A stretch of DNA of 49,588 nucleotides from Octopus bimaculoides (Eukaryota), in the NCBI RefSeq assembly GCF_001194135.2, contig NC_068985.1:76728453-76778040 (forward strand), written 5' to 3'. The notes beneath the pieces are model-generated. The model was not told where the DNA came from. It searched no databases and was given only the letters and a program-made list of their open reading frames with translations. Made by a program: the position numbers and the translations under genes. This document shows positions 4,330 to 42,366 of the stretch, in pieces. Position 1 is the first letter of the stretch. Each line of letters begins with the position of its first letter.

Positions 4330-6680
4330 TATGTTTTTGTAAGGCATGGTATAGACATGGTTGTACAGTTAAGAAGTTTTCATGAGCTACAGACGAAATC
4401 TGTTCTCAGAGCCTTCCTATTCATCATAGTCCTCCAGGCTATAAAAGAGAAATTTAAAACTGACTGTCTTTGGGAACTACTAGTAAATCTATGAATCTGT
4501 AGTAAAATTAGAAAAGAAATTCCAGGTGTAGTAGCAAAACCTGGAATTAGTAGGCCTTGCAATTATCTTAGCTAAGACCAAAGTTCTAGTTAACAGGAAA
4601 ACAAACAAGACTCTAACTCCTTTCGGGAAAATGGTCCTGTTTTGATATGTACGCAAGGTGTAGGTAGAAATTCCATCTGGTGTGCTCACTGCAAGCTATG
4701 GGCACTCAAGCGGTGCAGTGGAATCATAGGAACATTAACAGAGAAAGTAGCCTTTGTATGTGGCAGATGCACAGGAACAATAAACATTAAGAACACAGGG
4801 GAAATAGAATTTCTTGTATGTCCAGGAGGTTCCCTAAAAGTAGTAGTTTTTGTTACCTATGTGACCAAATTAGCAGTGGTGGAAGATGTCCTGAAAGTAA
4901 AGTTATTAGAATAAGAAGACAATGGAGGTAGTTCAGAGAGCTATTACCTTTGTTGGTGAGAAAAAGGTGTTTCAGCGTGAAAAGTATTAGGATGTCAAGA
5001 AAGTTCTTGCGGTTTTTAACCTTTAAATTCAGATGCACATAGCTCGGCTCAAACAAAATTTTATTAATCAAAATAAACACCATCAGAATCAACACACTTT
5101 TGTCAATGCGTAACAAGTTTATTTATGCCAGTAGCATAAAAATCCTGCGTTCTGGTGTCAATGAAGTCGTTGAAGGTGTGTTTGGCATCGTCTTGGTTTT
5201 TGAAGCATTTCTCACACAGGAAGTTGTCGAGATGCTTGAAAAAGTGGTAGTCGGTAGGCGAGAGGTCTGGTAAGTATGACAGATGAGGCAGAGTTTCGTA
5301 ACCCACTTCATTCAACTTCTGCAGGGTCAGTTGTGTGACATGCGGCTGAGAGTTGTCATGGAGAAGAATTGGTCCTTTTCTATTGACCAATGCTGGTTGT
5401 TGTTGTCGAAGTTTCTTATGCATTTCATCCATTTTCTGACAGTACTTCTCCACCGTAATGGTTTCACCTGGATCCAAAAAGCTGTGATAGATGAGACGGG
5501 CTGCAGACCACCAAACAGTCATCATGACCTTCTTTTGGTGCAACTTTGGCTTTGGGAAGTGCCGTAGAGCTTTGTCAGCATCCAATCATTGAGCTGAGCA
5601 TCGCTGGTTGTCATAAAGAATCCACTTTTCATCGCAAGTCACAATCCGGTCGAGAAACGGGTCGTTCTTGTTGCATAAAAGAAGGGAAGACGACACTTCA
5701 AAACGGCGTTTTTTTTGGGCTGTCGTTCAATTCATTTGGCACCCATTTCTCAAGTATTTTTGTTTTTCCAATCTCTTTCAAGTGGTTAGAAATTGTCTTA
5801 TACGTTATGTCTAATTCAGAAGCAAGCTCTCAAACATTTGTGTGTGGATTGGCTTCGACTAAGGCTCTTAGTTGATCATTGTCAACATCAGATGACCGAC
5901 CACTATGCTTATCATCTTCAAGTCACTCATCAACGCTATGAAATTTCTTGAACCACCATTGTGCTGTACATTCATTAGTGGTTTCTGGGCCAAATGCATC
6001 GTTGATATTGTGAGCTGTTTCAGCAGCCTTTCAGCCAAGCTTGAACTGGAATAAGAAAATTGTGCGAATTTGCTTTTTGTCCATGTTGTATTCAATGTTC
6101 CAGAAAAAAATGGCCTAATTATTCAAAAAGAAAAAGAGTAACAGGATTAGATAGAGTGAAAAACGGGCTTTAAAATTATATATAAAGTCAAAATAATTTA
6201 ACGAAAATTAATTTGAAAGTACATCATTTAAAACCCAAATTTAAAATTCCGCAAGAACTTTCTTGACAACCTAATAGATGGTATATGTACAAACAGCAGT
6301 GCTTCTTGGTAATGAGGTGTGGGTCATGAATACAGTGGACAAATGAAAGCAAGAAAGAAATGAAGCTAGTATGCTCCAGTGAGTGTGCAATATCAGTGTT
6401 TATGAACAACAGAGTACAAACTTGATAGAGAAAAATTGAGCACAAGAGAAATTAAATGTGATGTGCAAGAGAGAAGACTGCACTGGTATAGTCATATGAC
6501 ATGTACAGCTTTATGAAGAATTGCCAGTCATTATTGATGGAAGTTGTGGAAGACAAAGTCCCAGGAAAACATTGATGGAGTAGTGAAGGCTGATCTCAAA
6601 ATACTGAGCTTCAAAGAGGAGATGACAAAAAACTAAGATTATTGGAAATTTGATTTGCTCAAGAACTATCAATTTCAATG
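4330..6680 (+). mobile_element. Decayed RTE-clade LINE fragment, split by the mariner at 4987-6274
   Basis: Left part encodes GVGRNSIWCAHCKLWALKRCSG...CGRC and ELLPLL; right part continues TAVLLGNEVW...RRLHWYSHM, matching RTE C-terminal motifs (HGSETW, RLRWYGH) as recalled. Confidence 0.8.
4987..6274 (-). mobile_element. Full-length inactive mariner (Hsmar1/cecropia-like DD34D transposase pseudogene), 1288 bp
   Basis: TIRs ttaggatgtcaagaaagttcttgcgg / ccgcaagaactttcttgacaacctaa, TA on both sides (4985-86, 6275-76). Transposase 6084..5064: MDKKQIRTIFLFQF, WVPNEL, RIVTCDEKW, LLHDN, SPTDYHFF. Five in-frame TGA stops and a +1 frameshift near 5717. Confidence 0.95.
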
Positions 6681-8699: not shown

Positions 8700-9938
8700 G
8701 TAATGTCTAGCATGCTCCACTGGATGAGTAATGTGAAAGAAATGAAGCTAGCATGCTCCACTGGATGGGTAATGTTTGATAGAAATGAAGCTAGCATGCT
8801 CCACTGGATGGGAAATGTTTGAAAGAAATGAAGCTAGCATGCTCTGCTGGATGGGTAATGTTTGGAGCAAGATCGTTGCCAGTGCCCCTGGACTGGCTCT
8901 TGTGTGGGTGGCACATAAAATACACCATTTTGAGCATGGCCGTTGCCAGTACCGCCTGACTGGCCTTCATAGGATTTTCAAGCGAGATCGTTGCCAGTGC
9001 CTCTGAACTGGCTCTTGTGCGGGTGGCACATAAAATACACCATTTCGAGCATGGCCGTCGCCAGTACTGCCTGACTGGCCTCCGTGTGAGTGACACGTAA
9101 AAGCACCCACTACACTCTCTGAGTGGTTGGCGTTAGGAAGGGCATCCAGCTGTAGAAACTCTGCCAAATCAGATTGGAGGCTGGTGTTGCCATCCGGTTT
9201 CACCAGTCCTCAGTCAAATCGTCCAACCCATGCTAGCATGGAAAGTGTACGTTAAACGATGATGATGATGATGAAGCTAGCATGCTCCACTGGATGGGAA
9301 ATGTTTGAAAGAAAGGAAGCTAGCATGCTCTGCTGGATGGGTAATGTTAGTGTGCATGCATGACAGAATGTAAATGATTTAAGAGGAAAATTGTATATAA
9401 GAGGCATCAGATGTTGTGTGCAAGAGAGAAGGCTGCACTGGTTTTGGTCAAGTGATGCATATGGATGAGGACAGCTGCATAAAGAAGTACTGAGCTCTAA
9501 TTGTGGAGGGTACCTGTGGAAAGGATAGACCCAGGAAGACATGGAATGAAGTGATGAGAAAGGATCTTCAGATGCTGGGCCTCACCGAGGAAATGACAAG
9601 GGACTGGGAGATGTGGTGATTTGCTGTACTTGACAAGACATGTCAAGCTAAGTAAAATCGTTGTCTTCCACACATACAGGCTTGTCCTTTCAGGCACTGG
9701 TGCCACATGAAAAGTACCTGGACCAGTGTTGTATAAATGCACCCATGCCAGTGGCACATAAAAGGCACCCAGCACACTTGTTAAGTGGTTGGTCTTAGGA
9801 AGGGAATCCAGCCGTAGAAACCATGCCACAACAGACAGCTGGAGTCTGAACAGTTCCCTGTAAGCCAGCTCCATGTCAAACCGTCCAACCCAAGCCAGCA
9901 TGGAAAGCAGACATTAAACGATGGTGATGATGATGATT
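8700..9938 (+). mobile_element. Decayed RTE LINE 3' end (ORF C-terminus plus 3'UTR and (gat)n tail), with a 43-bp tandem amplification and a nested insertion
   Basis: ERNEASML motif, then RPRKTWNEVMRKDLQMLGLTEEM near 9530-9600, directly followed by the aggaagggcatccag-type 3'UTR and a gatgatgat tail at about 9920-9938. Confidence 0.8.
8863..9270 (+). mobile_element. RTE-3'UTR-type retroposon copy (5'-truncated LINE or partner SINE)
   Basis: Contains ggttggcgttaggaagggcatccagctgtagaaac and ends gttaaacgat(gat)n; flanked by 78-bp direct repeats (8785-8862, 9271-9348). Confidence 0.85.
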
Positions 9939-10996
9939 TTCACGTATGTAATAATGATAGCCACTGCAACTGTGGTATTAGGTAATGTTCCAACTGGAGT
10001 GTGTATAGTATAGATGTGTCTTAGTGTTTGTCCCCCACCACAACCACATGACAACCGCTTTTGGTTTGTTTACGTCCCTTTCAGAAAAAGAGACGGATTA
10101 AGTACCAGACTTTAAAAATAAGTACAGGGTTTGATTGCTTGACTAAAGCCTTCAAGGTGGTGCCCCAGCATGGCTACAGCCAGTGACTGAAACAAGTAAA
10201 AGCTATGTGCACGTATTTAATTTTAATGAATTTTAGCCAGCGGGAGGAGTTGAAAAAGTATTAGTAAAAGAAAGGAGGTGGGATGATAGCAAAAAAATCT
10301 GAGAAACACTGTTTTATATGTAAATTGAATGGAAGAGGTTGGATAGAGCTGATTTTAACATTGAATATATCCCCATGTAAACGCATAAGGTTTAAAGAAA
10401 GACCAATAATTTTTCCAGATAATGAAAACAACTTTCTTCTGACAATCCAGGAAATCCGGCACAAAAGATTCTTCTTATTAGCCCATTACAAGACATATTA
10501 CAGCTGCTTTCCTTTAATGGCAGTTTAGGCTTCTTCTCATCAGACTTAATTCAATACCAAGCACTAGATATTAAGTAGAATTTTTTTTTAATTCTCAATG
10601 CTATTAACACCACCACAAAAAGTGGGTATTTAAACCATGTAGATTATATTGTATATTTCAGAGAAAATAATTTTGCAAGGATAAAACTGCAAAACAGGAA
10701 AAGAATCATTGACTATTTTACTAGCAAGTTGATATTCAACCAACCCAAATAGCCAGGCTCTGGTGCAATGTTCAGTTTAAGTTAGGTTCTTTTTGTTTTA
10801 TTGTTTACTAATAAACACATATGCACAATTTGTATTTTGTTCCTTTTTCTCTATACTTCAATTTACTTGCTTAAAAATAAANNNNNNNNNNTGGTGTCTT
10901 TCTCCTGCATATTCTGGCGAAAGCTATATACATCAGCATGATAACTAATAAACAGTGCATCTGAACAAAAAATACCTTGTCATATATATATATATA

Positions 10997-11225
10997 TGGC
11001 CGTTGCCAGTACCGCCTGACTGGCCTCCGTGCAGGTGACACATAAAAGCACCCACTACACTCTCTGAGTGGCTGGCGTTAGGAAGGGCATCCAGCTGTAG
11101 AAACTCTGCCAAATCAGATTGGAGCCTGGTGTAGCCATCTGGTTTCACCAGTCCTCAGTCAAATCGTCCAACCCATGCTAGCATGGAAAGCGGACGTTAA
11201 ACGATGATGATGATGATGATGATGA
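10997..11225 (+). mobile_element. RTE-3'UTR-type retroposon copy (short)
   Basis: Close match to 9053-9275; ends in a (gat)n tail. Confidence 0.85.
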
Positions 11226-15029: not shown

Positions 15030-16166
15030 AATTGCTTCCTTAGTTAATTTCTGTTTATTTTCAGATCATTATAATGGAATGTCAAGTTAAGAAAAACACC
15101 TCCTTCTTTTTGTTTTTAATCAAGGTTCTAAGGCTGCAAAGCTGCTCGCAACATTTCTGCTGTGTATAGAGAGGGTGCCATAGCTGAAAGAACCACTCGT
15201 GATTGGTATGCCAAGTTCAAAAATGGAAATTTTGACCTCAAAGACGCACCTCGTTCTGGCCGTCCAATTGAGTTCGATGAAGAGCGATTAAACCAACTTT
15301 TGCACGAAAATTCTCGTCAAATGACAAGGGAACTGGCAGAGAAAATGGAATGCTCCCACACAGCTATAGAGAAGCATCTTCCCTTGATGGGAAATGTTCA
15401 GAAGTATGGAGCATGGGTTCCACATGCTTTAAGTGACAACAACAAAAATCAACGAGCCACAATCTCTGCTGGTTTGCTTGCTCATCACTGCTCAACTTAT
15501 GGACACAAGCAACCATTTCTTTACCGAATCGTTACTGGCAACAAAAAATCGTGCCTGTACATCAATATGAAGCAGCATAAGGAATGGCTTAGTCCCGGTA
15601 AACGAGCAACACCACACGTGAAATAAGAACTTCATCCGCATAAAACGATGTTGTGCATATGATGGGACTGGGAAGGGATTATCCATTTTGAATTGCTTGA
15701 ACAGAACCAAACGGTCAACGCAGAACTCTATGTCCAACAGCTGGAATGACTCAACACGGCTATTCAAGAGAAAGGTCCTAATCGTCAGCATGGAGTTCTT
15801 ATGCTGCACGACAACGCCCGCCCTCACATCACCAATATGACCAAGGAATCCATTCAAACGCATGGCTGAGAAGTGCTGCCACACTCGCCACACTCTCCTG
15901 ATTTGGCAACAGATTTCCACCTCTTTCGATCTCTTCCAAATGCTATGCGTGGAATTTCGTTCAATATTGATGCAGAATTGAGAACTTGGCTGGATCAATT
16001 TTTCAAGTCAAAATCAGGTGATTTCTACCAACAAGGTATTGAAAATCTCGTTGAACGTTGGGAAGAAGTTGTAAACAACAAGGGTGAATACATTATTGAT
16101 TAATTAGTTGTTATTTTTTTTTATTAAACCTTTTAAAAAACAGCAGGAACTTAGTTGCCAACCTAA
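15030..16166 (+). mobile_element. 5'-truncated inactive mariner (probably mellifera-like)
   Basis: Transposase remnant from ATG 15074 to 16103: WVPHAL, RIVTGNKK, LHDNARPH, HSPDLATDFHLFRSL, ending GEYIID*. Several stops. Right TIR caggaacttagttgccaacctaa followed by TA at 16167; no left TIR found. Confidence 0.9.
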
Positions 16167-17478
16167 TATATCACTGCCACCAGCCAATCCTACTCTTTCC
16201 ATCCAGATCCTATACTATCCACTTGGTCAAATCTTTCCTCCTTAAAAACGTCAACTTGCTGGAACTCCATCTTTAGCCATATTTTTTCTGACTTGTATCT
16301 TGCACCCAAACCATAAAAAGAGGTAGCTTGAGAGCAAATTAAAATAAATATTTCTATCTTAAAATTGCAGAGATCGTTTGTTTTGTTTTTTTTATTTTAT
16401 CTAAATACAAAACCTGTTATAAAACAATATAAAAATTAAGAGGGCAAGGGCAACTTTTAAATTACATAGATTTGCTAAATAAATGAAAAGAGTTCTGTTG
16501 CAGTATTCAGGGTTAACTCTTAGATACATTTAAACTACCAGTTCATCTATTTAAAAAAAAACAGAAAGCTTTGGTGAATAAAACAACATCAAAAATATTA
16601 AGATAAACTGTAGTTTATTAGGAAAACATTAAAAAAATGTTTAAAATAATAAAAAGAGAATAAGAATAATAAATTATCTAGAAAGGAATGTTTTCTTAAA
16701 ACTGAAACTAAACATTCTAAGAAAACTCTATTTAGCCCTATTGATATAGTTCACACACAAAACTGCATTTTTGCAGAGATCAAAAACAGTGTCTACAAAG
16801 AAATATAAACTATTTAAAAGATGATTTTCAAATTACCAACAGTAGATATGGAAATACAAGCACACAAAGCTATTTTAATGTACATACATACACACACATA
16901 TTATTAACATATACACAGATCATATAAGAGATTAATATACAGCACAAAAAGAATTTCTTCAGTTCAAATCTACAGTAGGAAATGTTATTTACAAAGAAAC
17001 AAACTGTTCCTTACAAACAAGTGATTCATGAAGACAAACCACATGCTTCAATTCTGTACAAGCTTTTACCATATCTGTCTGTACTCTAGATGTATTTGGG
17101 TTCAACACATACAGCAAGTACATATATAAACAGATGCCATCATTTCTGAGCTAACTGTTAGGGAAGACTGATAGCTGCTCACAGATTCACAGCATTTAAC
17201 AGAAAACTTCAACTCAGGGGTTTGCCAATAACAATTTCTGCCAAAATGCTGAAAGAATAAGAAAAGAAAACACAATGTAAAAAATGTAGTATATTACATC
17301 TTTAGAATTGAAGGGAAAACTGCAACTACAACAGAAATCTATCTGACACTGAAATTATTATTCTTACTTAAGGTTATCTGAGATTTACAGGTTTCAGTTA
17401 GTGAAGCTCTCATAAAACAAGTTTTATTTAGAGAAGCTGCTTTCTCATATGTTGCCAAATGACAACTCAGATGAAGAT

Positions 17479-18278: not shown

Positions 18279-18634
18279 TCATTTGTTGAGTGACAAAATA
18301 CTGGTCAGCTTCCGATACACACTGGGGTCGTATTTACTTTGTAATTCTTCAGCAATCATACTACATGTTCTTTCACTAAATGTCGTTGCTGAGAGCATTT
18401 TCTGAAATTTTGCAGGATCTACATGTTTCATAATTGCTTCTATTAAATTAATGTCTTTGCGTTCAATTGCATGCATCAGGGGTGTCATACCATTTCGGCC
18501 ATCATATACCTCTGGATCAGCACCATTCTTCAGTAACAAAGACACATTAACACAGTTGTCAATCATGACATTTTTATTATTTCTGGAGACAATTTTTCCA
18601 TGTTCCATTATGGCACAGAGCAGTGGTGTTAGTC
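18279..18634 (-). CDS. Terminal coding exon 5 (ankyrin repeats 4 and 5, degenerate 6, stop)
   Basis: Acceptor tttattttatctag|. G|GA completes Gly of DGLTPLL. Reads to ...KLTSILSLNK-TGA at 18279; overlaps the 128-aa track ORF 18279..18665. Confidence 0.92.
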
Positions 18635-21600
18635 CTAGATAAAATAAACATGGCAGCATAAGCAAGCTTTGAAAACATCTTCAATTACATAACACAACTT
18701 AGAGAGTAGAGAATAAAACAGAATTCTACTATCATCAAACAAGTGGTCAATCTTGATATGTAGAAAACAAGTAAACAGTAACTTGATACTGCAAACCCAA
18801 TGCAAACTAATAGTCTACAAAAGATGCAGTGAGATCTGATGAAGGCTGACACAGAAGGAAAAATTTGTATTTAAAACACGTACAAGAGCAGTAAGCAATA
18901 AAAGCACACATGAAAGGCAATCATTCAACTGCTCAGAAGAGTTGCAAGATGTAGTTAAACAGCTTCTTTTACAAAGATGACTTAATCAATAGTGATGGTG
19001 AATGTTCAAAAAACATAGCAGCCAGAGTAAGGATATAGTGGGGAAATTTCAAGGAATTATTACTCTTATCGGCAACATAGTGCTCCCAGACTGTATGACA
19101 ATTGTGTACCAAGTACTATGAGGCATGATAGTAAGACATGGGAGCTGAATGTGGAGGATATGCAAAGGTTAGAAAGAAATGAAATGAGCAATCTCTGCTG
19201 GGCATGTGGTGTCAATATGATCGAACAATGGAGCAGAGCCAGGAGAAAGATGGGTATTAGGGGAATCAATGATAGTGTGCAAGTGAGAAAATTGCACTGG
19301 TATGGACAACTGAAGAGATGTCGAGATATTTAGGAGGAAGAAGTATGCAGTAAAGAAAGACCAGTTAAATTAAAGCTGGATTGCATGAAGGAAGCAACAA
19401 TGGACCACAATAAATGGCCAAACACTAGAGGGGAACAACACAACTAATGCCAGTATGCAAAAATGGGAGGAGGAGGAGGAGAAGGAGAATGATGACAATA
19501 ACAACAATTACTAGTGTTGCATTCTAGGCAAAAAAAAAAAAAACTGCTCATTTAAGTTTACTTGACAAACAAAACACATTTTATTCTTACAAAATTAATG
19601 GTTAATGATGAAGTAAAAGCATCAAACAGTAAAAATAATTAATCCAACTAAAATAATTCAGTTTTTGCTGACATGGAGAAATGGATGCAAAACAAGAAGA
19701 AAAATAACTGAAATTTGACATTCTTTATCTTAATTATTTTCACTGATATTGTATTTACTTTCAGCCATCTATTTTCTGATGAATTTTGTAAATGTATAGC
19801 ATTTATTACTAATTTTGTTTTTCATTAATTTTTTTTAAGGAAATTTCAGTGAATTTAAAATAATTCAGAATTTGATTCTTTCTAAACTAAACATGTAGAT
19901 TTTGATTGAAATTCTCCTTACCATCACTGTTCTTAATGTTTGGATCAATTTTCTTTGATTCAAAGAGTTGTTTCAATGTTAGGTTGAACTCTTTTCCCTG
20001 TGTAGCTGCACAATGTAGAGCACTGCGTCGTTTCTGTTTTTTTTTCCAGAAATAAAATAAAATGTTGATTAAAGATTTGCAACAATTTACAAAAAGACTG
20101 AAAACTATAAAAACACAATTTCTCCTGTCATTCTTTTTGAAACTTTTTTCTTTCTAACATGATTGTTTTACTCATGTATTCAACAATTCATTTAAAAATA
20201 TTTGGCTACATAACTTTAAATTTGAATGAGATTTACAGTAATTTTCATTCTACATAGGATCATTTTATTTATAAAAATATATTTATGAGGGTAGAAAATA
20301 TATTTATGAGGGTCTGTTGTGTCGCTGAATTTTTACTGAGAACATATATTTTTTTGTGGTTAGATGATTCGGCATCTATTTCTAGCATATAGGAGTCCAC
20401 TTTTGCTGGTCATCCCTCTTATTTTTGTAGTATCATTTTATTATAACACACCTCAAAAAAATTTTGGATTTATATACACAAAAGACATCTATGTTTAGCA
20501 GAGATTTATCTGAAATTAATAAAGTTATCTTCATGCATAATAGTTTAGTGTGTTGAGATTTGATAGGATTAATTTCAGTATCAAATACCTATATATTTAT
20601 TTGTATATAAAACACACTTGAGTATAATGTGCACCACTTATTATGGGCTATGAAATTCTAGTAAAATATGTCTTATATACAGTGACTTTGTTTAATGATA
20701 TTGTTAAAAATAGACGTGTTCAATTAGATTTATTATAATTGCAGTGTAAAATACACTGGAAAAATTACTGCATCCTGAAAGCAAAAAGCATATTCAAAAG
20801 TGGCCCGTGATCTTTGTCAATGTAAGCTGTAAAAGTGTATGTACTTCTAATGTAAAGCCAATCTTAGTTTTACTTCTTCAACAGTAGTGTATATAATGAT
20901 AGCCAATTATAATAATCATATATTTCAAGAACAGAAGTATTTATCTGTTTCAGTTGATGTTCACATTTCGATGATGACAATCTTTATGTATTATCCTTAT
21001 TGATTATTTATTAAATCAATCTTCCTATTAAATAATTAAAGTGGTATTTTCATTGATAAAGTTATTACATTCTGGTCTTCTATACTGAAGGTTGATGGCA
21101 GTAATTCTACAAGACCCGCATCTGTTAGTTGCGCAGAACATTGAATATATTAGAAAACGCATTAGAAATTTACTTACCTCTCCAGGTATGTTTGGATTGG
21201 CACCATTACGCACTAGTTCACACACAACAGCTGGCTTATTGTAACATACAGCTAAATATAATGGTGTCTATTTTAAAAACAAAGAAAATAAAGATATATT
21301 TAATCATTGAAATGTTCAGTAAGGTGTGGATGATCATATAAGTTGACATTTCATGATAATAAATAGCAGCTGGATACAGTTTAAATTGATAGAGTGTTTG
21401 AGGAGGATGAATTTAGATTCAATAATATTAACTAGCCACAATAACATACTGGATTAATTATTATAATTCATCACTACAATAATTATCCTTATTTAAACAA
21501 TGTAGCTGTTTGATGGTGTAAGTCAACTTGTAACTGAATAAGACTACTTCCTAAACTCAATAAATCCATGCAAATGTTCAGAGACCAAGAAGTTCCTGTG

Positions 21601-22232: not shown

Positions 22233-25200
22233 NNNNNNNNNNATCCACTCACAAGGCTTTTGTTAGCCCAAGGCTATAGCAGAAGACACTTGCCCAAGGT
22301 GCCACGCAGTGGGACTGAACCTGGAAACATGTGGTTGGTAAGCAAGCTACTTACCACCGAGAAGTTGAAAATGATTAAAAAAAAAAGGCTTGTTTCAAAG
22401 ACAAAGCTAAACAGATGTTTGAGTTGACATGTTTCAGAATGCTTATGAAAGATATATTTCATGTAGGTTTATTGAAACTAGATTTTTCTTTCTTTACAAG
22501 ATGATCAAAAGATGCACCTGTGCCTATAAGAGAAGATGAATTGGATATTTTAAAAAATATAATGAAGTTGTGAAGAGAAAACTTACTTGGTTTAAAGAAT
22601 TGCAGTCATTAATTATTTCAATTTTTTTTATCCGTTTAATTCTCTCAAGAAGAGCTTTAACCATGTTAACATCAGTTACGCACACAGCAGCATGGAGATA
22701 GTTGTTGCCATCAGAGTCAATAGCAAGCAGTTCCTCATCAGTCCTGGAAGCAACACAGCGGCGAGCTATTGTCTGATGAGATGTACCTTGAAAAACAATA
22801 TACAGAAAGGAAAAGATGAAACAAAAGAATTTATATTTGGATAAGGAATTTATTTTATTTTTATGTTAAGTTAGGAGAGAGTGGAGACAGTGCCTATGAT
22901 CTTTGCAAACCTTCCCAGACAGGTACAATTGCTGCACTTAACACCTGACTTGAATCTCTACAGGCCTAAGTCTGCAGTAAAAAATGGGACACAAAGGAAA
23001 ACAGGGAAAGGCACTCAAGAATCAGTGTATTGAGCATATTATCCAAAGTATGTTTTCAAATGACTGGGGATATTTGTAAAAGAATATTTAAACCAGCCAT
23101 GGACAATCTGTGGTGCACAGGACTTTTTGAATGACATGCCTAATGGAAAATTAGCCTCAAATTTTTTTTTTTAGTAGTGATGCCCATCTAATAATGGGCC
23201 ATGTTTCATATGGCCCACTTCTCAAAAAAAGTTGTCCGTGCCTGATTTAAGCCAAGGCACTTCTCATAGCTGAGCAACAATTTGCGAATATAGATATCTT
23301 AATGCATTAAGCTAATTAAGAAAAATATATTACACTATATCTGTATTAAATCTAATGGAAGGAAGATAGAACTTTCTAATTTGAGTGATAGTTTAGGTGT
23401 GATGAATCTAGTCAAATAGGTCATCAGCATTAACTTATGAGAAAACAGAATCGTGACATTCATACTTCTCCAAGGGCATTAAAAATATTGATTTCAAATA
23501 TTAGCACAAAACCAGCAGGTTTAGGGGAGGGGCTAAGTCAATTACATCAACCCCGAAAGGACGAGAGGTAAAAGTCAACCTTGGCAGAATTTGAATTCAG
23601 AACATAAAGACAGACAAAATGACACTAAGTATTTTGCCCAATGTGCTAATGATTCTACCAGCTTGCTCCCTAAGGACATTAAAAATGTGGATGACTTAAA
23701 TAAAGTGCAGTAAATGAAGTGAGTTAAAAGTAGAGGATGGACTCAATTCACTAAAAAGTTATAACTAATCAACAGCATTTAGAATAAGCTGTAATATATA
23801 TTATGCAAATGAACTTACAATACCAACAAACACAGCAACAAATAAGAATGTGACTAGTCTGTTATTCAGAAGTAAAAACCAGATTATATTTAAATATACT
23901 AAGCTTCTAGGTCAAAGTAAAAACTTGAGTAGTTGAGTAGATGCTAACATATATAATGCAGGGAATGCTTATAAAGTTAACTAGAATTAAGTCAATGAGG
24001 AATAAAACAATATTAGCTAACATATCTTTATTACTTTTACTTAGCCTTAGCTTTTTAATGCTTCCTATAATGAATATTAAACACTATCTAAACTATTGTT
24101 TTCCATCACTCTCAGCTTCATCAAATACCCAGAAATGGATAAATATTGCCCAACCACAAAACATCTGGAAAAGAATGTAGCATTGATTATATTTTGTTAA
24201 GTTGGAGCAGGTATTAACAGAATCATTAGAATGTTGGACAAATATGCCTTATGGCATGTGTTCTGACTCTTTATATTCTGGGTTCAGATCCTACCAAGGT
24301 TGACTTCACCTCTCATTCCTTCAGGGTCAATCAAATAAAGTACTAATCAAATACTGGACCTTGTACATATGTTAGAAATTATCTGAACAAAAACAATAAC
24401 AATTTCCAAGTTGGGCACAAGCTTCTGAGTTTTGATGAGAAGGGGTAAAGCTGAAAGGATTAACTTCAACATTATTTTATTGACACTAGAAGAATGTGCT
24501 ACTAATTTCTGCTATCCAGTGCTCTAACAATAATAACAATGATACATACAAGTGCCTAACAAATACCGTTATAAGCATTACCAAATATCCAGTCAAACAT
24601 GAAACTGATTTAGCAAATACATATCTACTATTCCTTTCTAAAGTAGCTATCTTCCTTAATCTTGATGAAGCACAAATGTTTTTGATATTCGAAAACAATG
24701 AGCACACAGGATACAAAACTGAATCATGAGTGCACTTAGTGATAATGGCTAGAAATATGAACAATGCCAATAAACTATAAGACATTTCAATGCATTACTA
24801 TCTTGACTATTGAAATTATTTATCCATGCCGATATGAAAAATGAAAACCATAGACATTACCATAGTACAGATTTGTGGAATCTTACCAATAATATATTTA
24901 ATTAGCTCTTAAATAGGAGTCTGACAGAATTTCAAGACTAAACAATTGTAAGAAAATTTGTTGTTTGTTTTATATGAAAGACACACCTCTAAACAAAACA
25001 TTACAGCCCACTAAAGCAACAAGGAAACCTCTAGTCACTTGACCTGGCAGAAATAGCAGCCAAATCAGACCCAAATAACAGCCAACCAGTTTTAAAAACT
25101 GAAGAACACACTGGATAATGTAGTCTTTGAAACACTATGTTTCATACTTCATACAAAAGGCAAAGTCGATGAAATCTGAACTCAATGTGAAGACAAAGTC

Positions 25201-28200
25201 CACCAACTCGCCACCTTAATAATAATAATCCTTTCTACTGAAGGCACAAGGTCTGGAATTTGGTGGGGAGGGAACTAGTTGATTACACTGACCCCAGTGT
25301 TTCACCAGTAATTTATTGACCCTGAAATGATGAAAGGCAAAGTCAACCTCAGCAGAATTTGAACTCAGAACACAAGGACAGACAAAATGCCACTAAGCAT
25401 TTTGCTCAGCATGCTAACGATTCTGCCAGCTCCCCACTTTACTACTAATAATAACAATCATTTCTTCTAAAGGAACAAGGCCTGAATTTTGCGGGGAGGG
25501 GGCCAGTCGATTAGATAAACCCCAGTATGCAACTGGCACTTAATTTATCGACCCCAAAAGGATGAAAGGTAAAGTTAACCTTGGCAGAATTTGAACACAG
25601 AACATAATGACAGACGAAATGCCACTAGGCATTTTGCCCAGCATGCTAACAATTCTGCCAGTTCACCTCAGGGTTTCATTAGTACTTAATTTATCAACCC
25701 CAAAAGGATGAAAGGCAAAATCAACCTCGGTAGAATTTGAACTCAGAACATAAGATGAACGGAATACTACTGAGCATTTTATTTGGCATGCTAACAATTC
25801 TGCCAGCTTGCCACCTTCATCATAATAATAATAATGATAATAATAATAATAATAATGATAATCCTTTCTACTAAAGGCACAAGGCCTGAAATTTCAGGGG
25901 AAGGGACTAGTCGATTATATCGACCTTAGTGTTTCACTGGTACCTCTAATTTATCGACCCTGAAAGGATGAAAGGCAAAGCCGACCTCAACGGAATTTGA
26001 ACTCAGAATGTAAGGACAGACAAAATGCCACTAAGCATTAGCCTGGTGTGCTAATGATTCTGCCAGCTCACCGCCTTCTTCATAATAATAATAATCTTCA
26101 ATCTCTCTGGTACTCATATGAACTTTCGTCTGTCTTAAAAAATGACAACATAATAATACTGACATTGGCACAGAGCAACACCAAATGACTAAACATTGTG
26201 CAGGGGTAAGCTGAAAAGCTAAGGAATTATACTAACCTAGCTGTTTAATTGTGGAAGCACATGACCTAGGGGTTAGAGCAGCAGACTCGTGGTCGAGGGA
26301 TTGCAGGTTCGAATTTCAGACCAAGCAATGTATGTGTTTATGAGCAAAACACCCAAGCTCCACACAGCTCCGGCAGAAGGTAATGGCAAACTTCTGCTGA
26401 CTCTTTCGCCACAATTTTCTCTTGCTCTTTCCTCCTGCATCTAGCAACTCACCTGCAATGGACCAGCGTCCCATCCAGGTGGGGAACCTATATGCCAATG
26501 AAACCAGGAAACCAGCCCTTATGAGCCAAGCATGGCTCGAGAAGGAACAAACAACAGCTGTTTAAGTAAAAACATGGTGAACTAGGCGCAACTGAACTGA
26601 TACACAACCATTTCTGTAAGGACACTGACAAATTACCAATAAAGGTAGATACAGGCACATTCAAGAAAATAGCAATACTAGGATCTGTTAATACTGTTTA
26701 AAATTTTCACACAGTATTTGTTAACCATAAACATATTTCTTAGTCTCAAACATTCTCATTAACTCTGAATACTTCTATACATATTTTCCATTAAACATAT
26801 TCACTAGCAATGGAGATTTTAGTTAATTAAAGGTTAACATTGTTGTTAACCTTAAAACATTTCTATTTCTGATTTAGGCACAGGGCCTGCAATTTGGGGG
26901 GAGTGGCAGGGGTAGATTACCCCAGTACTAAACTGGGACTTTATTTTAACAACTCCAAAATCATGAAAGCAATATGTCCAAAGTATAACTAACTCTTGTT
27001 TCAAGAAATATTTTTCTGACCCCTGAAAGAATGGAAAGTAAAGTTGACCTTGATGGAATTTGAACTCAGAAGACCTAAAACTTGGGGGAGGGGATAGTCA
27101 ATTATAATCAACTCCAAGAGTTGCACTGTATTTTATTTTATTGACCCCGAAAAGAATGAAAGGTAAAGTTAATTTAAGTGAGCTTTGAACTCAGAAATTT
27201 AAGAGTCAGAAGCCAGAACAAATATTGTAACAATACATAATTTCTGATTAGACACAGGGCCAGCAATTCTGAGGGGAAATGAGGGTAGATGACCCCAGTA
27301 CTAGACTGGTACTTTATTTTAACAACTCCAAAAATATGAAAGCCAAAGCTTGACCACCTTGAGATTTGAATTCAGAATATACAAAACCAAAACCAAAAAC
27401 AAACAAAAAATCATCAAAGGTATTTTTTCAACATTCAAACAATTTTGTCAGCTTGCCATCTTATTGATAATTATTCTTATTCTTTTTTTTTAAATTAAAA
27501 AAAAACATTTACAATAACAAATAATCTAAAAACATAGCATAAACAAACCTGGTTTGAGTCCATTAGTATCAGTATTGAAAACAGCTTTTCCCTTCTTGGG
27601 AGTGTTGAAATGCTTTGGGAAAACGTGTTCATCTGACAAAGGTGGTTTGATGTCTGATGCAGGAGGTTTGGGTAAAATTGGCTTTGGTAAAGATTTTGTG
27701 GTTGGTGTTTGTGGCTTTTGAACAAGGATAAGAGCATTTGAAGTAGGTGACATGATATACAGTGGTGGGGGGTTCAACACTAAGAGAGGAGTAGAAGAGA
27801 CTGCTGTTGATGTTAAGGTTCCTGGAGTTGTGGTTTGGTTAGGTAGTGCTTGTGTAACAACAGTAGGATTTTGTAGATTGGATGTGGTCCCATTTATTAT
27901 AACATGTGGCGATTGGGAAGAATAAACTTGACCGCCTTGTCCAACAAGTTCAGCAACAGGGGAATAAATCAGTGGGGATTTATTGGGATTTACCGTACAT
28001 GGTACCGAAACTGAAGGCAGATTTTGCCCTTCAAGAGAATTTATCCAGTTTTGCCGCATATTGACAGTCTGCGCTTGGCTGGTAGCATTCATTATAATCT
28101 GTTCTTGTTCATCATCATTCAAAATAGTTTGACTTGGGCTGTCAGCATTCAGAATGGTTTGATTTGGGCTCCCAGCATTTATGTTCTGATGTGGGCTGCC

Positions 28201-30213
28201 AGCATTCACTATGGTCTGACCAGGGCTCCCAGGATTTATAATGGTCTGACTTGGGCTGCCAGCATTCACTAGGGTCCGACCTGGGCTGCCAGCATTCATT
28301 ATAGTCTGACTTGGGCTGCCAGCATTCACTAGGGTCTGACTAGGGCTCCCAGCATTTATTATGTTCTGACGTGGGCTGCCAGCATTCATTATGTTCTGAT
28401 GTGGGCTGCCAGCATTCATTATGTTCTGATGTGGGCTGCCAGCATTCATTATGGTCTGATGTGGGCTGCCAGCATTCATTATGGTCTGATGTGGGCTGCC
28501 AGCATTCATTATGGTCTGATGTGGGCTACCAGCATTCACTAGAGTCTGACCTGGGCTGCCAGCATTCATTATGGGCTGACCTGGACTCCCCACATTCACT
28601 ATAGAGTGACCTGGGCTCCCAGCATTTGCTATAGTCTGAACTGGGCTTCCAGCATTCATTATGGCTTGACTTGGGATTCCAGCATTCATTATAACCTGAT
28701 TCTGACTATTAGGATTCATCATAATACGACCTTGGTTACCAGCATTTATCATAGTCCCAGCTGTGTTACGAGTATTCATTACATTTTGATTTGGTCTACC
28801 AGTATTCATTTCAGCTAGTCCTTGACAAACAGAACTAACTCTGTTCACTCTTTGGCCACTACCACTTATGGGTTGTTGTTGGCCAGCACTTCCATTTATC
28901 ATCTGTTCTTGGTCATAATTATGCAAGCCTTGCAACTGGTGGTCAGAACCCATTATCGTGGTACATTTGTCTAGGCCAATATTCATTACAGATTTCCTTT
29001 CACCACCAGAATTCCTTATAGATCTGATTTGGTTACTCTCATTCATTGCAATTTGCCCTTGGCTGCAGATATTGAGTAAGTTACCATCTATAAACTGCTG
29101 GCCCATATATGGAGGAGCATTTATGATGCTACATCCATTAGGTGTATCATTCTGCTTCAAAGAATTTAGCAAAACCTGTTCTTGAACGTTCTTATCCATT
29201 GAACTTGACCCACGGTTTTTCAGACCTGGCATTTGTTCATAAATGGCAGCCAGTCGATTTAAATTTTCTTGCTCAGTAATATTTACATTTAGACTTTCAG
29301 TCATCTCAAAGTTGGGACAATGCTGATCAAGAAGCTGAGGAACACACTGAGGAGGTGAAGCCTTATTATATTGATCCTCTATATTAAAAGTTTCTGGAAT
29401 ATTGTTAGGAGTGGATTCTTCGAAGCCATTCTTCAATGTTTCTTTAATGTTTTTTATATGAGAAATTTTAGAAGAACTAAAGTCCTCCTTACATATGGTG
29501 GGATACATATTTTTATTGTTATCTTCTTGTAAAATAGCCATCAAATCATCCAGTGTATTTTCTTGATTTAAAATGGCAAGATCACTCTGATTATCATTTT
29601 GATCAGGAGATCTTGAGCACTCTGAGAGTGTATATGGTGTACTTCGAGCACTGTCAGATTCATAATTTTCACCACTAACTGAAATTATTCCCCCATTTGT
29701 CACTGGAAAACTACTGCTGAGCCAAGGCTCATTCAATTCACAGGGTTTGCAAACAGGTCTTTGGTATTTATAGTATTGTACATCATGAGAATCATATGAT
29801 CGTTTAGATTTATTCTCAGTAAACACATGATCTTGGGAAGAGGCAAAATAAGCTTCATGAGTCCTTGAAAGACTGACTGGTACACCATTAGTTGGACCTC
29901 TTTTCAAGCTTTCACCTTTGTTCAAATTGTCATCGGTTTCCTCATCTGATTCTGATTCTTCTCCTGCAGAAGCTAATTCAACTGATTTCATTGAGGGATC
30001 TGATATAGTAAGATTTGAAAAATTCCTTTCGAGAACATCAGACTCAGAACCAACAGTTAATGAGTTTGGGGCTTTATATTCTTTAGGTTGTTCCTCTTCT
30101 TCACTAACATTACCCTCCTCACCAGAAAGAAACTGCTGGTCTCTTTCTAATGTCCTTTCTTCTGGTAATTTCCTAATTTCAGTCTTAGTTTCTTCTTTTG
30201 TCAATTGCCCCAT
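18279..30213 (-). CDS. Atypical/nuclear IkappaB-like ankyrin-repeat protein (IkBzeta/IkBNS/Bcl-3-like), 5 coding exons, 1140 aa
   Basis: Manual splice: join(27549..30213,22587..22786,21178..21267,19922..20033,18279..18634) = 2665+200+90+112+356 = 3423 nt, open throughout, intron phases 1/0/0/1, all GT-AG. C-terminal ankyrin repeats start DGNNYLHAAV, NQTPLYLAV, KRRSALHCAA, DGLTPLLCAI, RNGMTPLMHAI. The CAxxxH motif plus insertion in ANK4 and the DxRNG spacing before ANK5 match the IkB family as I recall it. Subfamily assignment is by recalled similarity only. Confidence 0.88.
18700..19330 (+). mobile_element. Decayed RTE LINE fragment in intron 4, antisense to the gene
   Basis: ORF 19118..19333 HDSKTW...RLERNEM...RKLHWYGQ matches the other RTE C-terminal remnants in this window. 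Confidence 0.75.
19922..20033 (-). CDS. Coding exon 4 (ankyrin repeat 3): KRRSALHCAATQGKEFNLTLKQLFESKKIDPNIKNSD(G)
   Basis: Acceptor ...aaacag| and donor GATG|GTAAGG. 112 nt, phase 0/1. Spacing from the preceding N-I-P-G-E fits the 33-aa ankyrin register. Confidence 0.9.
21178..21267 (-). CDS. Coding exon 3 (ankyrin repeat 2): TPLYLAVCYNKPAVVCELVRNGANPNIPGE
   Basis: Acceptor tttctttgtttttaaaatag| and donor GAG|GTAAGT. 90 nt, phase 0/0, canonical ankyrin pattern TPLxxAV...L...GA.PN. Confidence 0.92.
21992..22357 (-). mobile_element. CORE-like tRNA SINE (family B) in intron 2
   Basis: Reverse of gtggtaagtagcttgc...ggttcagtcccactgcgtggcaccttgggcaagtgtc (CORE-like accttgggcaagt); internal (ca/ta)n; spans a 10-N gap. 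Confidence 0.8.
22587..22786 (-). CDS. Coding exon 2 (ankyrin repeat 1): (G)TSHQTIARRCVASRTDEELLAIDSDGNNYLHAAVCVTDVNMVKALLERIKRIKKIEIINDCNSLNQ
   Basis: Acceptor ttgtttttcaag| and donor CAA|GTAAGT. 200 nt, open. Not present in the supplied ORF track. Confidence 0.92.
23094..23244. mobile_element. hAT (Charlie-like) MITE, 151 bp, in intron 1
   Basis: TIRs cagccatggacaa / ttgtccgtgcctg (11/13); 8-bp TSD atttaaac / atttaagc. Confidence 0.78.
23480..23675 (-). mobile_element. Family-C SINE copy
   Basis: aaagtcaaccttggcagaatttgaattcagaac...gattctaccagc. Confidence 0.75.
24205..24390 (+). mobile_element. Family-C SINE copy, inverted relative to its neighbours
   Basis: agaatcattag...ttctgggttcagatcctaccaaggttgacttcacc; older, diverged. 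Confidence 0.65.
25147..26080 (-). mobile_element. Head-to-tail cluster of at least 4 family-C SINE copies in intron 1
   Basis: Repeated aaaggcaaagtcaacct...agaatttgaactcagaac...tgctaacgattctgccagc units separated by (aat)n tails. Confidence 0.85.
26249..26555 (+). mobile_element. tRNA-derived SINE (family D) with 10-bp TSD
   Basis: tRNA-like head tgacctaggggttagagc...gcaggttcgaatt (A/B boxes); central cctgcaatggaccagcgtcccatccagg resembles a conserved SINE core domain as recalled; TSD agctgtttaa (26239-48, 26556-65). Confidence 0.8.
26870..27460 (-). mobile_element. Cluster of partial family-C SINE copies next to the exon 1 donor
   Basis: Repeated gaatttgaactcagaa / aaagttgacct / ggcacagggcc modules. 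Confidence 0.7.
27549..30213 (-). CDS. Coding exon 1 of IkB-like gene: 888-aa acidic/Q-N-S-P-rich disordered N-terminus
   Basis: 895-aa ORF in a window where no other intact ORF exceeds about 170 aa (longer track ORFs run through Ns). In-frame TGA 8 codons upstream of the ATG at 30213. Donor CCAG|GTTTGT at 27549/27548 (phase 1) joins in frame to exon 2. Confidence 0.9.
28065..28813 (-). repeat. Coding 30-bp minisatellite, about 25 units of consensus IMNAGSPHQT (18 Ser-Pro units at 28126..28660)
   Basis: Unit tgggctgccagcattcattatggtctgatg repeated on + strand; near-identical units in the centre (about 28370-28530), diverged at both ends; one unit is 27 bp. Confidence 0.95.
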
Positions 30214-30290
30214 TTTTTTTGCTTTGTTTTGTTTTCAAAATAATCACGTTGAAGTTGGTATGTAATACTTGAAGGTGTTAACCAAATAAA
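30214..30290 (-). other. 5'UTR portion of the large exon, implying at least one upstream non-coding exon
   Basis: Acceptor gccttcttttttaattgcag| ends at 30291, 77 nt upstream of the ATG; in-frame stop lies between them. Confidence 0.6.
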
Positions 30291-32855: not shown

Positions 32856-33664
32856 GTAAGTGATGAAAATATCAGGGGACATATACATTTTAGTAGTTTT
32901 AGATTTGTTTGAATGTTTTTGCTCAGTAGTTTGCTTTTTTAACAATGTAGTAGATGCTGAAACCACAACAGAATGCTCTCCTTGATTGATCATGTGACAA
33001 CACAGGATAAACATCTACATGTTGATAACGTTATACAAAAAGACATCTATAATTACCAGTTCTATAGATGTTAGCAGTGGTTCAGCTTCAGAGTTAGGTG
33101 ATCCTGTCAATGTTGTTGCTATGATTCCATTTTTCAATAATCTTATTTTGTCATTGCTTAATTCTTCCACTGAAGCTATACATCCTGCCGGTTGCTTCCC
33201 AAGGTTTCTAATAGTCATTCTCATTTAGTATAATCACTTATTTCAAACATGCCCGGTGTCATTAGAATTGCTAGGAGTAAAAATCCTGCTGATATAGTTA
33301 TTTCAATCTTATGAATACGCAAACCCCACCACCATGACTTATAACTGTGATTTTCAGCAGTGGAGGCTGTGACTTCAAGTCTGAACAAAGATGTGGACTG
33401 CACAAACCATCATGAAAGTAGCCAACCAAAGAGAATAGTAACTCTGAATAAATACTTGCATGAGGGTGGGTAGACTTAGCCTCCATAAGCCATAGTGAGG
33501 GCAACTCATTTAAGAGAGTAGTAACTTTGAATAAAAATTAACACAGAGGAAACTTAAGTGCTGCAGACAAACTGATCAAACACAACCAATCAATGTTGTG
33601 AAGTACCAGCAGAAGGAAGATACCAGCTAGTAAAATGAGGCTGAAGTTAGATTTTTGTTTAGAG

Positions 33665-34746
33665 TTGGAGAAGTTGGAAATTCGTACAGTTTTGAAATAT
33701 GAGTTCTTTCTTGGGAATACAGAATTACAGACAGCTCGGAATATTAATGGAGCATTTCATTCTAATGTTATTACACAGCAGACAGTATCAAATTGGTTTG
33801 CAAAATTTCGTTCTGGTAACTTTGACCTCACAAATGAGCAACACGGTTGACCAGAAACAAAAGTGGATAATGACAAACTGAAAACCACCGTTGAGTCAGA
33901 TCCATCTCAAAGTATCCATGAATTATCGTTGTTTTCTGGTGTTAGCAAGCAAACAATATTGACACACCTAGTTCAAATCAGTAAAGTGAAAAAGGTGGAT
34001 AAGTGGGTTCCACATGAACTCAATGAAAATCAGAAACAGCAACGTTTAGAAGCCTGCATTACACTACTTTCTTGTCACAATAATGAATCATTTTTTAATC
34101 GAATTGTATCATGTGATGAGAAATAAATCCAATACAACAAGCATAAATGTTCAGCACAATGATTGGACAAAGACGAGCCACTAAAACATACCAAAAAGCA
34201 AAATTCATCAAAAGAAGCTGATGGTGTGTGTTTGGTGGTCTGGCGCAGGTGTGATCCATTATGATTTCATTAAACCGGGGTCATCAATCACAGCCCAAGT
34301 ATACTGCAGCCAAATGATGCAGAAACTTACAAAAAAACTGCCTAGATTAGTCAACAGATCCACTCTTATTTTATTGCAAGATAACATCAGACCACATATC
34401 ACAAAAATGACATTGGCGTAACTACAGTAGTTGGAGTTGGAAGTTCTCCATCATCCATCATACTCACCTTGTCTTGCACCCACTGACTACCACTTCTTCC
34501 AGAATTTGGATAACTTTGATAGGAAAAAAATTTAATTCCAACAATGCTGTAAAACAGGCCTTCCAAGATTTTATTGACTCTAGATTGCCAGGCTTTTACA
34601 GTTCCGGACTGGACAAGATACCACTGAAATGGCAAAAGTGTATTGACAATATGGGTGCATACTTTGATGAATAAAACTATTCCTTGTATTTATAAAACAT
34701 TAGTAAACTTTTTTTTCTTTTCTACAAATTTTATACTTGACAACCT
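33665..34746 (+). mobile_element. 5'-truncated inactive mariner (cecropia-like, distinct from the 4987 copy)
   Basis: Remnant KLEIRTVLKYEF...KWVPHEL...RIVSCDEK...VWWSGAGVIHY...LLQDNIRPH...APTDYHFF...WQKCIDNMGAYFDE* with stops and frameshifts; right TIR-like end ttatacttgacaaccta; no left TIR seen. Confidence 0.9.
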
Positions 34747-41880: not shown

Positions 41881-42366
41881 GATTAAAACTTGCATTAAAG
41901 AACATACTTTAAACTTTGAAACTGATGACAGCATAGACCAAACAGTAAAATGTCGTTTTCCTTGCCCTGTAAAACTTCCTTAGTTAAAACATGCCCTAAC
42001 ATTCATTCAGTAAAACTTTCTTATACAAAATCTTAGCAAAATGATTCTCATTTTTGTCTAAAACTCACTTTTTGAAAACACACACTAATATATTCACAGG
42101 AAAACTCGTATGAAAACTATAATTTTGTATCATTATTTTCATACATATAGAAATATTTACCTTCTTTGTTAAAAAAATAAACACGTTTTATTCAAATATA
42201 TATATACATAAATTTTTTGTAATTTTCAATTCATTACTTTTCTAAAAACACACATTGTTCAGCTTTATAGATGAATAATGAAAGAAAATGTCCTACTTTA
42301 TGTTTGAGCTTTATTTCTGCTTGTACCACACCTAACTATATGTATATCTATATCTANNNNNNNNNN

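Follow-up and report, generated by a model that had tools for sequence, protein, structure and literature searches.

The window analysed here, a stretch of 49,588 nucleotides from Octopus bimaculoides (NCBI RefSeq assembly GCF_001194135.2, contig NC_068985.1, positions 76,728,453 to 76,778,040 of the forward strand), contains the gene LOC106877231, whose 1140-amino-acid product carries a tandem array of ten-residue units with one Ser-Pro dipeptide (S-P) each, located upstream of an ankyrin domain of the IkB type. As judged from the comparisons reported below, this array is a real, undescribed octopod module on a known regulator family and is selectively maintained.

The array comprises 18 back-to-back units encoded on the minus strand (window 28126-28662), corresponding to residues 518-696 of the product. 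Seventeen units are decamers and one is a 9-mer (INAGSPNQT), with the unit consensus (I/L)(M/V/I)NAGSP(H/G/S)Q(T/N). A script counted 18 S-P, 17 G-S-P, 13 SPxx[ST] and 4 SPSQ motifs within the array and thereby reproduced every count of the sequence-only reading, which had described 18 consecutive units with one S-P each, 13 SPxx[ST] and 4 SPSQ. The only S-P that is not preceded by Gly is that of the final unit, ILNADSPSQT. Tandem Repeats Finder reported a single strong array in the window (28116-28692; period 30, 19.3 copies, 82% matches, score 636). It sits mid-way in an 895-codon open reading frame (27526-30213, minus strand) within a 2.7-kb exon, and its end is separated by 199 residues from a conserved ARRCVA segment at residue 896 and by 215 residues from the first ankyrin repeat (IDSDGNNYLH, 911-920), in agreement with the distance of about 200 residues to the ankyrin domain given by the sequence-only reading. 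The core array is flanked on both sides by degenerate units:

28126..28662, minus strand: core array, 18 tandem units (Tandem Repeats Finder, translation and register, motif counts)
28663..29133, minus strand: degenerate N-terminal units of the form hydrophobic-hydrophobic-N-x7 without S-P, fading towards residue 361 (register listing)
28063..28125, minus strand: two terminal degenerate units, ILNDDEQEQI and IMNATSQAQTV, residues 697-717 (alignment)

The degenerate upstream units cover residues ~360-517 and include VMNTRNTAGT, MINAGNQGRI, MMNPNSQNQV and IMNAGIPSQA. The acidic terminal unit ILNDDEQEQI was kept in all three octopods aligned. Pfam family PF25296 ("Decapeptide repeat region") matched residues 548-602 with 16.8 bits at a curated cut-off of 45 bits and was rejected. 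Likewise, five proteins that matched only the array in a search of 1.84 billion proteins (P0149, P0153, P0174, P0237 and P0253) are unrelated decapeptide repeat proteins, with repeats including TLVTCDEPSE, KLEEAGSVAQ, SLEATGAPVQ and TVEGGSPLHQ, and were dismissed as periodicity artefacts.

The exons of the gene, all on the minus strand, were placed by hand from splice signals. The resulting spliced model of 1140 amino acids is letter-for-letter identical to RefSeq XP_014781577.1, annotated as "uncharacterized protein LOC106877231", which bears out the product length stated beforehand. An RNA-derived, spliced contig of 1549 nucleotides (L001; Logan SRR16213285), whose segments are each 96-99% identical to the window, confirms all junctions from exon 1 to exon 5:

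27549..30213, minus strand: coding exon 1, with the ATG at 30213 and the donor after 27549; N-terminal motifs, array and pre-ankyrin segment (open reading frame, splice sites; donor junction by L001)
22587..22786, minus strand: exon 2, ARRCVA segment and ankyrin repeat 1 including a D-x-D-G of nuclear-IkB type (splice signals, RNA contig)
21178..21267, minus strand: exon 3, ankyrin repeat 2 (splice signals, RNA contig)
19922..20033, minus strand: exon 4, ankyrin repeat 3 (splice signals, RNA contig)
18279..18634, minus strand: coding part of exon 5, ankyrin repeats 4-6 and stop codon (splice signals, RNA contig; Pfam Ank_2 at residues 991-1095)
16973..17245, minus strand: exon of the 3′ untranslated region (3′ UTR), joined to ~18263 (BLASTN of L001 against the window)

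Exon 5 runs on as 3′ UTR to about 18263, and the 3′ UTR intron indicated by L001 (~18263 to 17245, minus strand) begins ~16 bases past the stop codon. At the other end of L001, the first 24 bases, which include an in-frame TGA, have no match in the window or in the O. sinensis locus. Alignment with the window starts at 28027, ~100 bases downstream of the array, where no AG acceptor is present. This odd 5′ end may have arisen in assembly, may reflect a difference between species or may belong to a transcript that lacks the array and begins in an unusual way; we treated it as one of the first two and not as evidence for the array being spliced out. A word-indexed search with the array and its flanks gave no match and hence no further RNA fragments across the array by this route. 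The array is kept in all four annotated O. vulgaris isoforms; it is real and translated. Seven codons upstream of the start codon (window 30235-30237, minus strand) lies an in-frame TGA beside a run of A; the annotation of the O. vulgaris isoform P0292 gives it a long extension at the N-terminus that reads through the equivalent region and is unavailable in O. bimaculoides.

Homologues with the array were found in Octopus and Argonauta, with the following numbers of units:

O. bimaculoides: 18 S-P units
O. sinensis (P0001, 91% identical): 19 S-P units
O. vulgaris (four annotated isoforms): 18 S-P units
Argonauta hians (58% identical over the whole protein): 15 S-P units

The Argonauta units follow the consensus I-T-N-V-G-S-P-G-(K/R/H)-(V/I). 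No array was present in the cuttlefish Acanthosepion or in a decapodiform transcript, both of which have a Gln-rich stretch at the array position, nor in most of 20 other relatives examined (among them 16 further molluscs or relatives and a brachiopod). The array is therefore octopod-specific, as the sequence-only reading had supposed in calling it a lineage-specific module. Its presence in Octopus and Argonauta and absence in decapodiforms place its origin in the octopod lineage, after the decapodiform split and before the split between Octopus and Argonauta, and it has been kept since. The latter split dates back on the order of 100 million years. On sequence grounds, the comparison identifies the array as a tandem amplification, in octopods, of a ten-residue unit in the central low-complexity region between the N-terminal motifs and the ankyrin domain.

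For the host protein, Pfam recognized only ankyrin repeats (residues 949-1095). Single-sequence ankyrin searches were dominated by many-repeat ankyrin proteins; among natural domains of similar size, Bcl-3 and IkB-zeta stood out. It took profile searches and a ranking by single domains to separate the IkBs. Searched against the PDB, a profile built from 20 ankyrin domains of the family matched IkB-zeta (9bor) with 120.8 bits in one stretch (profile positions 10-249 of 259), followed by Bcl-3 (1k1a, 102.9 bits), IkB-alpha (96 bits) and p100 (93.8 bits). IkB-zeta was the best natural full-length match in the PDB, higher totals being reached only by many-repeat and designed repeat proteins. Using hhalign, the probability was 99.7 to fish IkB-zeta and likewise 99.7 to fish BCL3, and the collinear alignment with IkB-zeta took in the stretch preceding repeat 1 as well as an insertion within repeat 4. 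In the ranking by best single-domain score among 119 ankyrin proteins, IkB-zeta was first and BCL3 fourth.

An Asp residue at the N-terminus of repeat 1 (Asp-451 of mouse IkB-zeta) is needed for p50 binding; nuclear IkBs keep it, and cytoplasmic IkBs have another residue there (PMC11393961). The octopus sequence A-I-D-S-D-G-N-N was aligned by hhalign with M-Q-D-A-D-G-D-T of fish IkB-zeta, so that, by this alignment, the Asp of nuclear-IkB type is present, placed two residues ahead of the D-G in repeat 1. We take IkB-alpha to read T-E-D-G-D at this site, and the assignment of the octopus residue as the counterpart of Asp-451 draws in part on this assumption. Together, profile, hhalign, single-domain rank and Asp residue justify describing the host as a Bcl-3/IkB-zeta-like protein, and the earlier description of its ankyrin domain as IkB-type held. 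The term nuclear would apply to it by homology.

The host shows further likenesses to, and differences from, the two vertebrate proteins. With IkB-zeta it shares a long N-terminal part of low conservation, and in IkB-zeta a regulatory or activation region lies just upstream of the repeats; in the human protein the transactivation domain comprises residues 321-394, N-terminal of the repeats (PMC9574490). The octopus array sits roughly at the corresponding place. In repeat 7 of IkB-zeta, basic residues (Lys-717/719) serve promoter binding (PMC9574490), whereas the octopus and other mollusc proteins end after repeat 6 (...RKLTSILSLNK), without repeat 7 or an equivalent of Lys-717/719. Among the sequences read, a seventh repeat was seen in the relative from the brachiopod Lingula (P0217) and in the relatives P0244 and P0254. 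An OCA-type peptide in the N-terminal region is confined to IkB-zeta (PMC11393961), and a simple pattern search, which is a weak test, found no OCA-type motif [VI]KE[LI]L in the octopus protein. Basic clusters are present at residues 873 (KKGK), 939 (KRIKK) and 986 (KRR). The fish IkB-zeta isoform examined (P0019) differs from the octopus protein in having no decapeptide array. Bcl-3, which matches the ankyrin domain equally well by hhalign, bears outside its repeats a region rich in Ser and Pro, and GSK3 phosphorylation of this region alters the activity and target-gene selectivity of the protein (PMC4931663); judged by its title, a study cited there also ties GSK3 phosphorylation of Bcl-3 to its degradation. 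This region of Bcl-3 is C-terminal, short and non-tandem, in contrast to the strictly periodic octopus array on the N-terminal side of the repeats.

An exhaustive search of 1.84 billion representatives delineated a family of proteins of 590-1340 amino acids whose C-termini align in one stretch with octopus residues ~730-1136. Its members come from cephalopods (Argonauta, Acanthosepion), bivalves (Sinanodonta, Solemya, Argopecten, Mytilus), gastropods (Haliotis, Lymnaea, Bulinus, Biomphalaria, Patella, Lottia, Elysia, Bradybaena), the chiton Liolophura and the brachiopod Lingula. Several mollusc members were named automatically "NF-kappa-B inhibitor zeta" or "NFKBIZ" (NCBI or UniRef) and one O. 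vulgaris isoform "B-cell lymphoma 3". Because a survey of 2013 placed IkB-zeta and IkBNS in vertebrates only (PMC3553144), "Bcl-3/IkB-zeta-like relative" is a better name for the mollusc family than "orthologue". The open literature searched yielded no paper on this family or on the array. Most of the mollusc and brachiopod members read also keep short motifs without known function (window 29521-29907 and 27652-27795, minus strand), which in octopus take the forms R-G-P-x-x-G-x-P-V, K-R-x-x-D...Y-K-Y-x-R-P, S-G-G-x-V-x-V and an acidic L-x-D-L-x-x-I-L; a Pro/hydrophobic segment (residues 807-854, window 27652-27795) ends with I-L-P-K-P-P just before the ankyrin domain.

Conservation within the unit was determined per position from 48 regular units of three species. 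S6 (codons AGC/AGT) and P7 (CCA/CCT/CCG/CCC) were invariant in all 48 units, G5 was kept in 46 with four different codons and N3 in 43, and position 1 was hydrophobic in 46. Positions 2, 4 and 8-10 differed between Octopus and Argonauta. The ratio of nonsynonymous to synonymous substitution rates (dN/dS) was calculated by the Nei-Gojobori method for O. bimaculoides against O. sinensis; as counts were small and the middle of the array compares paralogous units, the following values are indications rather than tests:

Ankyrin domain: dN/dS 0.13
Array: dN/dS 0.29
N-terminal edge units of the array (residues 518-567): dN/dS 0.15
N-terminal region: dN/dS 0.84
Degenerate units, residues 391-517 (window 28663-29041): dN/dS 3.0 (23 nonsynonymous : 2 synonymous)
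Post-array region: dN/dS 0.69

The value of ~3 in residues 391-517, opposite to that of the array, may be due to relaxed selection, to positive selection or to the small numbers. All indels between species were multiples of three and preserved the frame. Units at the edges of the array were orthologous between O. bimaculoides and O. sinensis and the middle was turned over, the central units being identical at the DNA level, which corresponds to minisatellite-like dynamics; O. vulgaris and O. sinensis, whose proteins are closely similar, differ by exactly one unit. From these data the array is selectively maintained, the skeleton hydrophobic-x-N-x-G-S-P being held at period 10 while positions 2, 4 and 8-10 and the number of units (15-19) drift. 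Purifying selection on the S-P core is clear, as would be predicted for an array of phospho-acceptors.

A multisite S-P switch is a reasonable reading of the array, which we hold tentatively and at somewhat less than even probability. It corresponds to the phosphorylation rheostat of the sequence-only reading without its kinase details. Within the family, the GSK3-phosphorylated Ser/Pro-rich tail of Bcl-3 offers a precedent for it, as does the activation domain that IkB-zeta has at roughly the array position. The proposed priming by GSK3 (SPxxS/T) was not conserved, SPxx[ST] falling from 13 of 18 units in O. bimaculoides to 4 of 15 in Argonauta, and neither was the proposed ATM/ATR motif SPSQ, of which O. 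bimaculoides has four, O. sinensis two and Argonauta none. Conversely, SPx[KR] occurs once in O. bimaculoides and in 7 of the 15 Argonauta units. The CDK-type SPx[KR] is specific to Argonauta and the GSK3-type S/T at +4 specific to Octopus. In all species position -2 is A or V and position -1 is G, so that a MAPK-type P at -2 is missing. The minimal S-P alone is common to all four octopods; its conservation is compatible with proline-directed phosphorylation and does not single out a kinase. The heptads of the RNA polymerase II C-terminal domain, the SP repeats of NFAT and the KSP repeats of neurofilament-H are experimentally phosphorylated, most of them with a recognizable kinase context. The octopus array resembles these systems in its tandem or clustered short units, in having S-P as the conserved element and in the variation of unit number between lineages. 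It differs from them in conserving only the minimal S-P, within a skeleton hydrophobic-x-N-x-G that has no known kinase or docking meaning.

Tandem arrays have also arisen elsewhere in the family. A scan of 24 members revealed four independent arrays at non-homologous positions. Besides the octopod array, the scallop Argopecten irradians (P0141, residues ~362-447) has ~10 copies of the 8-mer [AV]GSP[MV]MQQ, and the land snail Bradybaena similaris (P0157) has two arrays (~322-569 and 655-834) formed by ELLGSP(T/A/I)/ELLGSHR and SQQWASND. G-S-P beside a hydrophobic doublet occurs in three of the four arrays, the octopod array included. Under a tripeptide-frequency model derived from array-free members, the probability that any tripeptide is common to three of four arrays is ~1e-3, a post hoc value. 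This hints at convergent selection for G-S-P units in the family, with four arrays being a small sample. An ancestral family motif "hydrophobic-hydrophobic-x0-2-S-P" was enriched only weakly in non-array members (26 observed against 16.3 expected, P ~0.03 uncorrected) and was not relied on.

Several observations weigh against a multisite S-P switch. The kinase-specific contexts of the sequence-only reading are not conserved across octopods, and none of the 48 units has exchanged S for T or D/E, a replacement often seen at phosphosites. Kinase recognition does not account for the invariant Gly at -1, for a period held strictly at 10 or for conservation that alternates over positions 1, 3 and 5; these features fit a strand-plus-turn repeat. 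The dN/dS of the array rests on small counts and mid-array on pairs of paralogous units, and the best AlphaFold2 model folds the array at a predicted local distance difference test score (pLDDT) of 70-85 instead of showing disorder. The skeleton hydrophobic-x-N-x-G-S-P at period 10 fits a strand-plus-turn repeat about as well as a phospho-array. The units might form a beta repeat that is structured or self-associates, as a beta-solenoid or as a labile cross-beta assembly, with Q9-T10-I1-M2-N3-A4 as strand, stacked Ile and Asn ladders and G5-S6-P7-x8 as turn. G-S-P would then be conserved for its geometry and not as a kinase site, and any phosphorylation would act by breaking turns. We judge this explanation to be on the unlikely side. 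The model just mentioned has 6-residue strands (Q9-A4) and 4-residue turns (G5-x8) in exact register with the units, the quoted pLDDT applying mid-array; conservation alternates as stated and includes positions 6-7, with positions 2, 4 and 8-10 variable; and the Argonauta units (V-I-T-N-V-G-S-P-G-K) combine many beta-branched residues with S-P-G-x, a classic turn sequence. The repeat encoded by the antisense frame of the same DNA gave no structure (pLDDT 35.6), a control that is not decisive as it comprised 77 amino acids and a single sequence. However, the prediction carries limited weight. The array was folded in only one of five AlphaFold2 models (mean pLDDT 45, 37.5, 37, 32 and 27; three-sequence alignment). 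Foldseek found no significant analogue in the PDB, the best matches being left-handed beta-helices with E >= 0.04 and a TM score < 0.25. Closest to the model are beta-solenoid proteins such as the left-handed beta-helix acyltransferases LpxD and GlmU, with which the array shares an alternating pattern, here of apolar residues and Asn, and Gly/Pro turns; it differs from them in the absence of a significant structural or sequence match and in a fold that was not reproduced across models. Moreover, the prediction belongs to a known class of artefact (PMC11795689), the orthologues have plainly low-complexity Gln-, Ser- or Pro-rich sequence in the array region, and one Pro and one Gly per ten residues are typical of disordered sequence. 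It is a long shot that both ideas combine in a phosphorylation-gated self-assembly, in which a strand-turn stack with Ile/Asn ladders and G-S-P turns would let the nuclear IkB polymerize or condense, each S-P turn being an independent "melt" switch and the assembly being graded by the number of phosphorylated units. The hydrophobic-doublet/GSP arrays of scallop and land snail would, with equally small probability, represent convergent solutions to the same need.

Two simpler explanations dispense with regulation by phosphorylation. According to one, which we regard as unlikely, the array replaced an ancestral Gln-rich stretch and serves as an activation region or spacer of low complexity, which would work through its composition and through regularly spaced I/M "stickers" separated by flexible G-S-P-x-Q-T spacers. 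The Gln-rich region at the same place in decapodiform orthologues, the weaker hydrophobic-hydrophobic-N units without S-P on the array flanks, the drift of unit number between close species and the pairing of a hydrophobic doublet with GSP in the short arrays of scallop (MMQQ[AV]GSP) and land snail (ELLGSP) agree with it. A pure spacer, however, would not be expected to keep S and P in 48 of 48 units from Octopus to Argonauta when the third positions of codons are turned over, and the dN/dS of the array is below that of the surrounding low-complexity sequence. The other explanation is a selectively neutral coding minisatellite, homogenized by unequal crossing-over or gene conversion and tolerated in a disordered region. 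The DNA-identical central units, the difference of exactly one unit between O. vulgaris and O. sinensis and the turned-over middle between orthologous edges are what it would produce, but the persistence of the array and its G-S-P core from Octopus to Argonauta despite 58% whole-protein identity, the excess of synonymous differences over replacements per site and the invariably preserved frame make it very improbable.

Other features of the window were recorded as well. Fragments of mariner/Mos1-type transposases, whose copies look broken, lie around and inside the introns of the gene (5103-5585, minus strand; 15162-15626, plus strand; 33635-34126, plus strand), with Pfam scores of 76.7 bits for Transposase_1 and of 25.5 and 52.9 bits for HTH_48. 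Assembly gaps (runs of N) are present at 1797-2466, 10882-10891, 22233-22242 and 42357-42366 and leave the array untouched; the large gap at 1797-2466 is flanked by AT and TG microsatellites, and one of the small gaps is in the intron between exons 2 and 3. An element of ~115-138 bp, probably a short interspersed octopus repeat, occurs in tandem pairs at 611-883, 8707-9081 and ~10948-11154.

In vertebrate relatives of the host protein, the ankyrin domain binds NF-kB p50. If the multisite S-P switch applies, each unit would offer one proline-directed phospho-acceptor (S-P) beside a short hydrophobic contact. The array as a whole would serve as a flexible, multivalent region for co-regulation or activation, with interactions, stability or localization of the protein graded by the number of phosphorylated S-P sites. 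Nuclear IkBs such as Bcl-3 and IkB-zeta choose which NF-kB target genes fire, and the workings of their disordered parts are poorly understood even in mammals. Octopods represent a natural experiment in this respect, with a periodic G-S-P module of 15-19 copies on an otherwise conserved co-regulator that has a Gln-rich stretch in the sister lineages. If the array were merely a tolerated repeat, it would be of local interest. If the units fold or self-associate, they would constitute a rare structured repeat recently born from low-complexity sequence in a transcription regulator. If they are phosphorylated, the array would be a clean multisite switch whose units can be counted, and the differing unit numbers of the species would supply a ready-made series.

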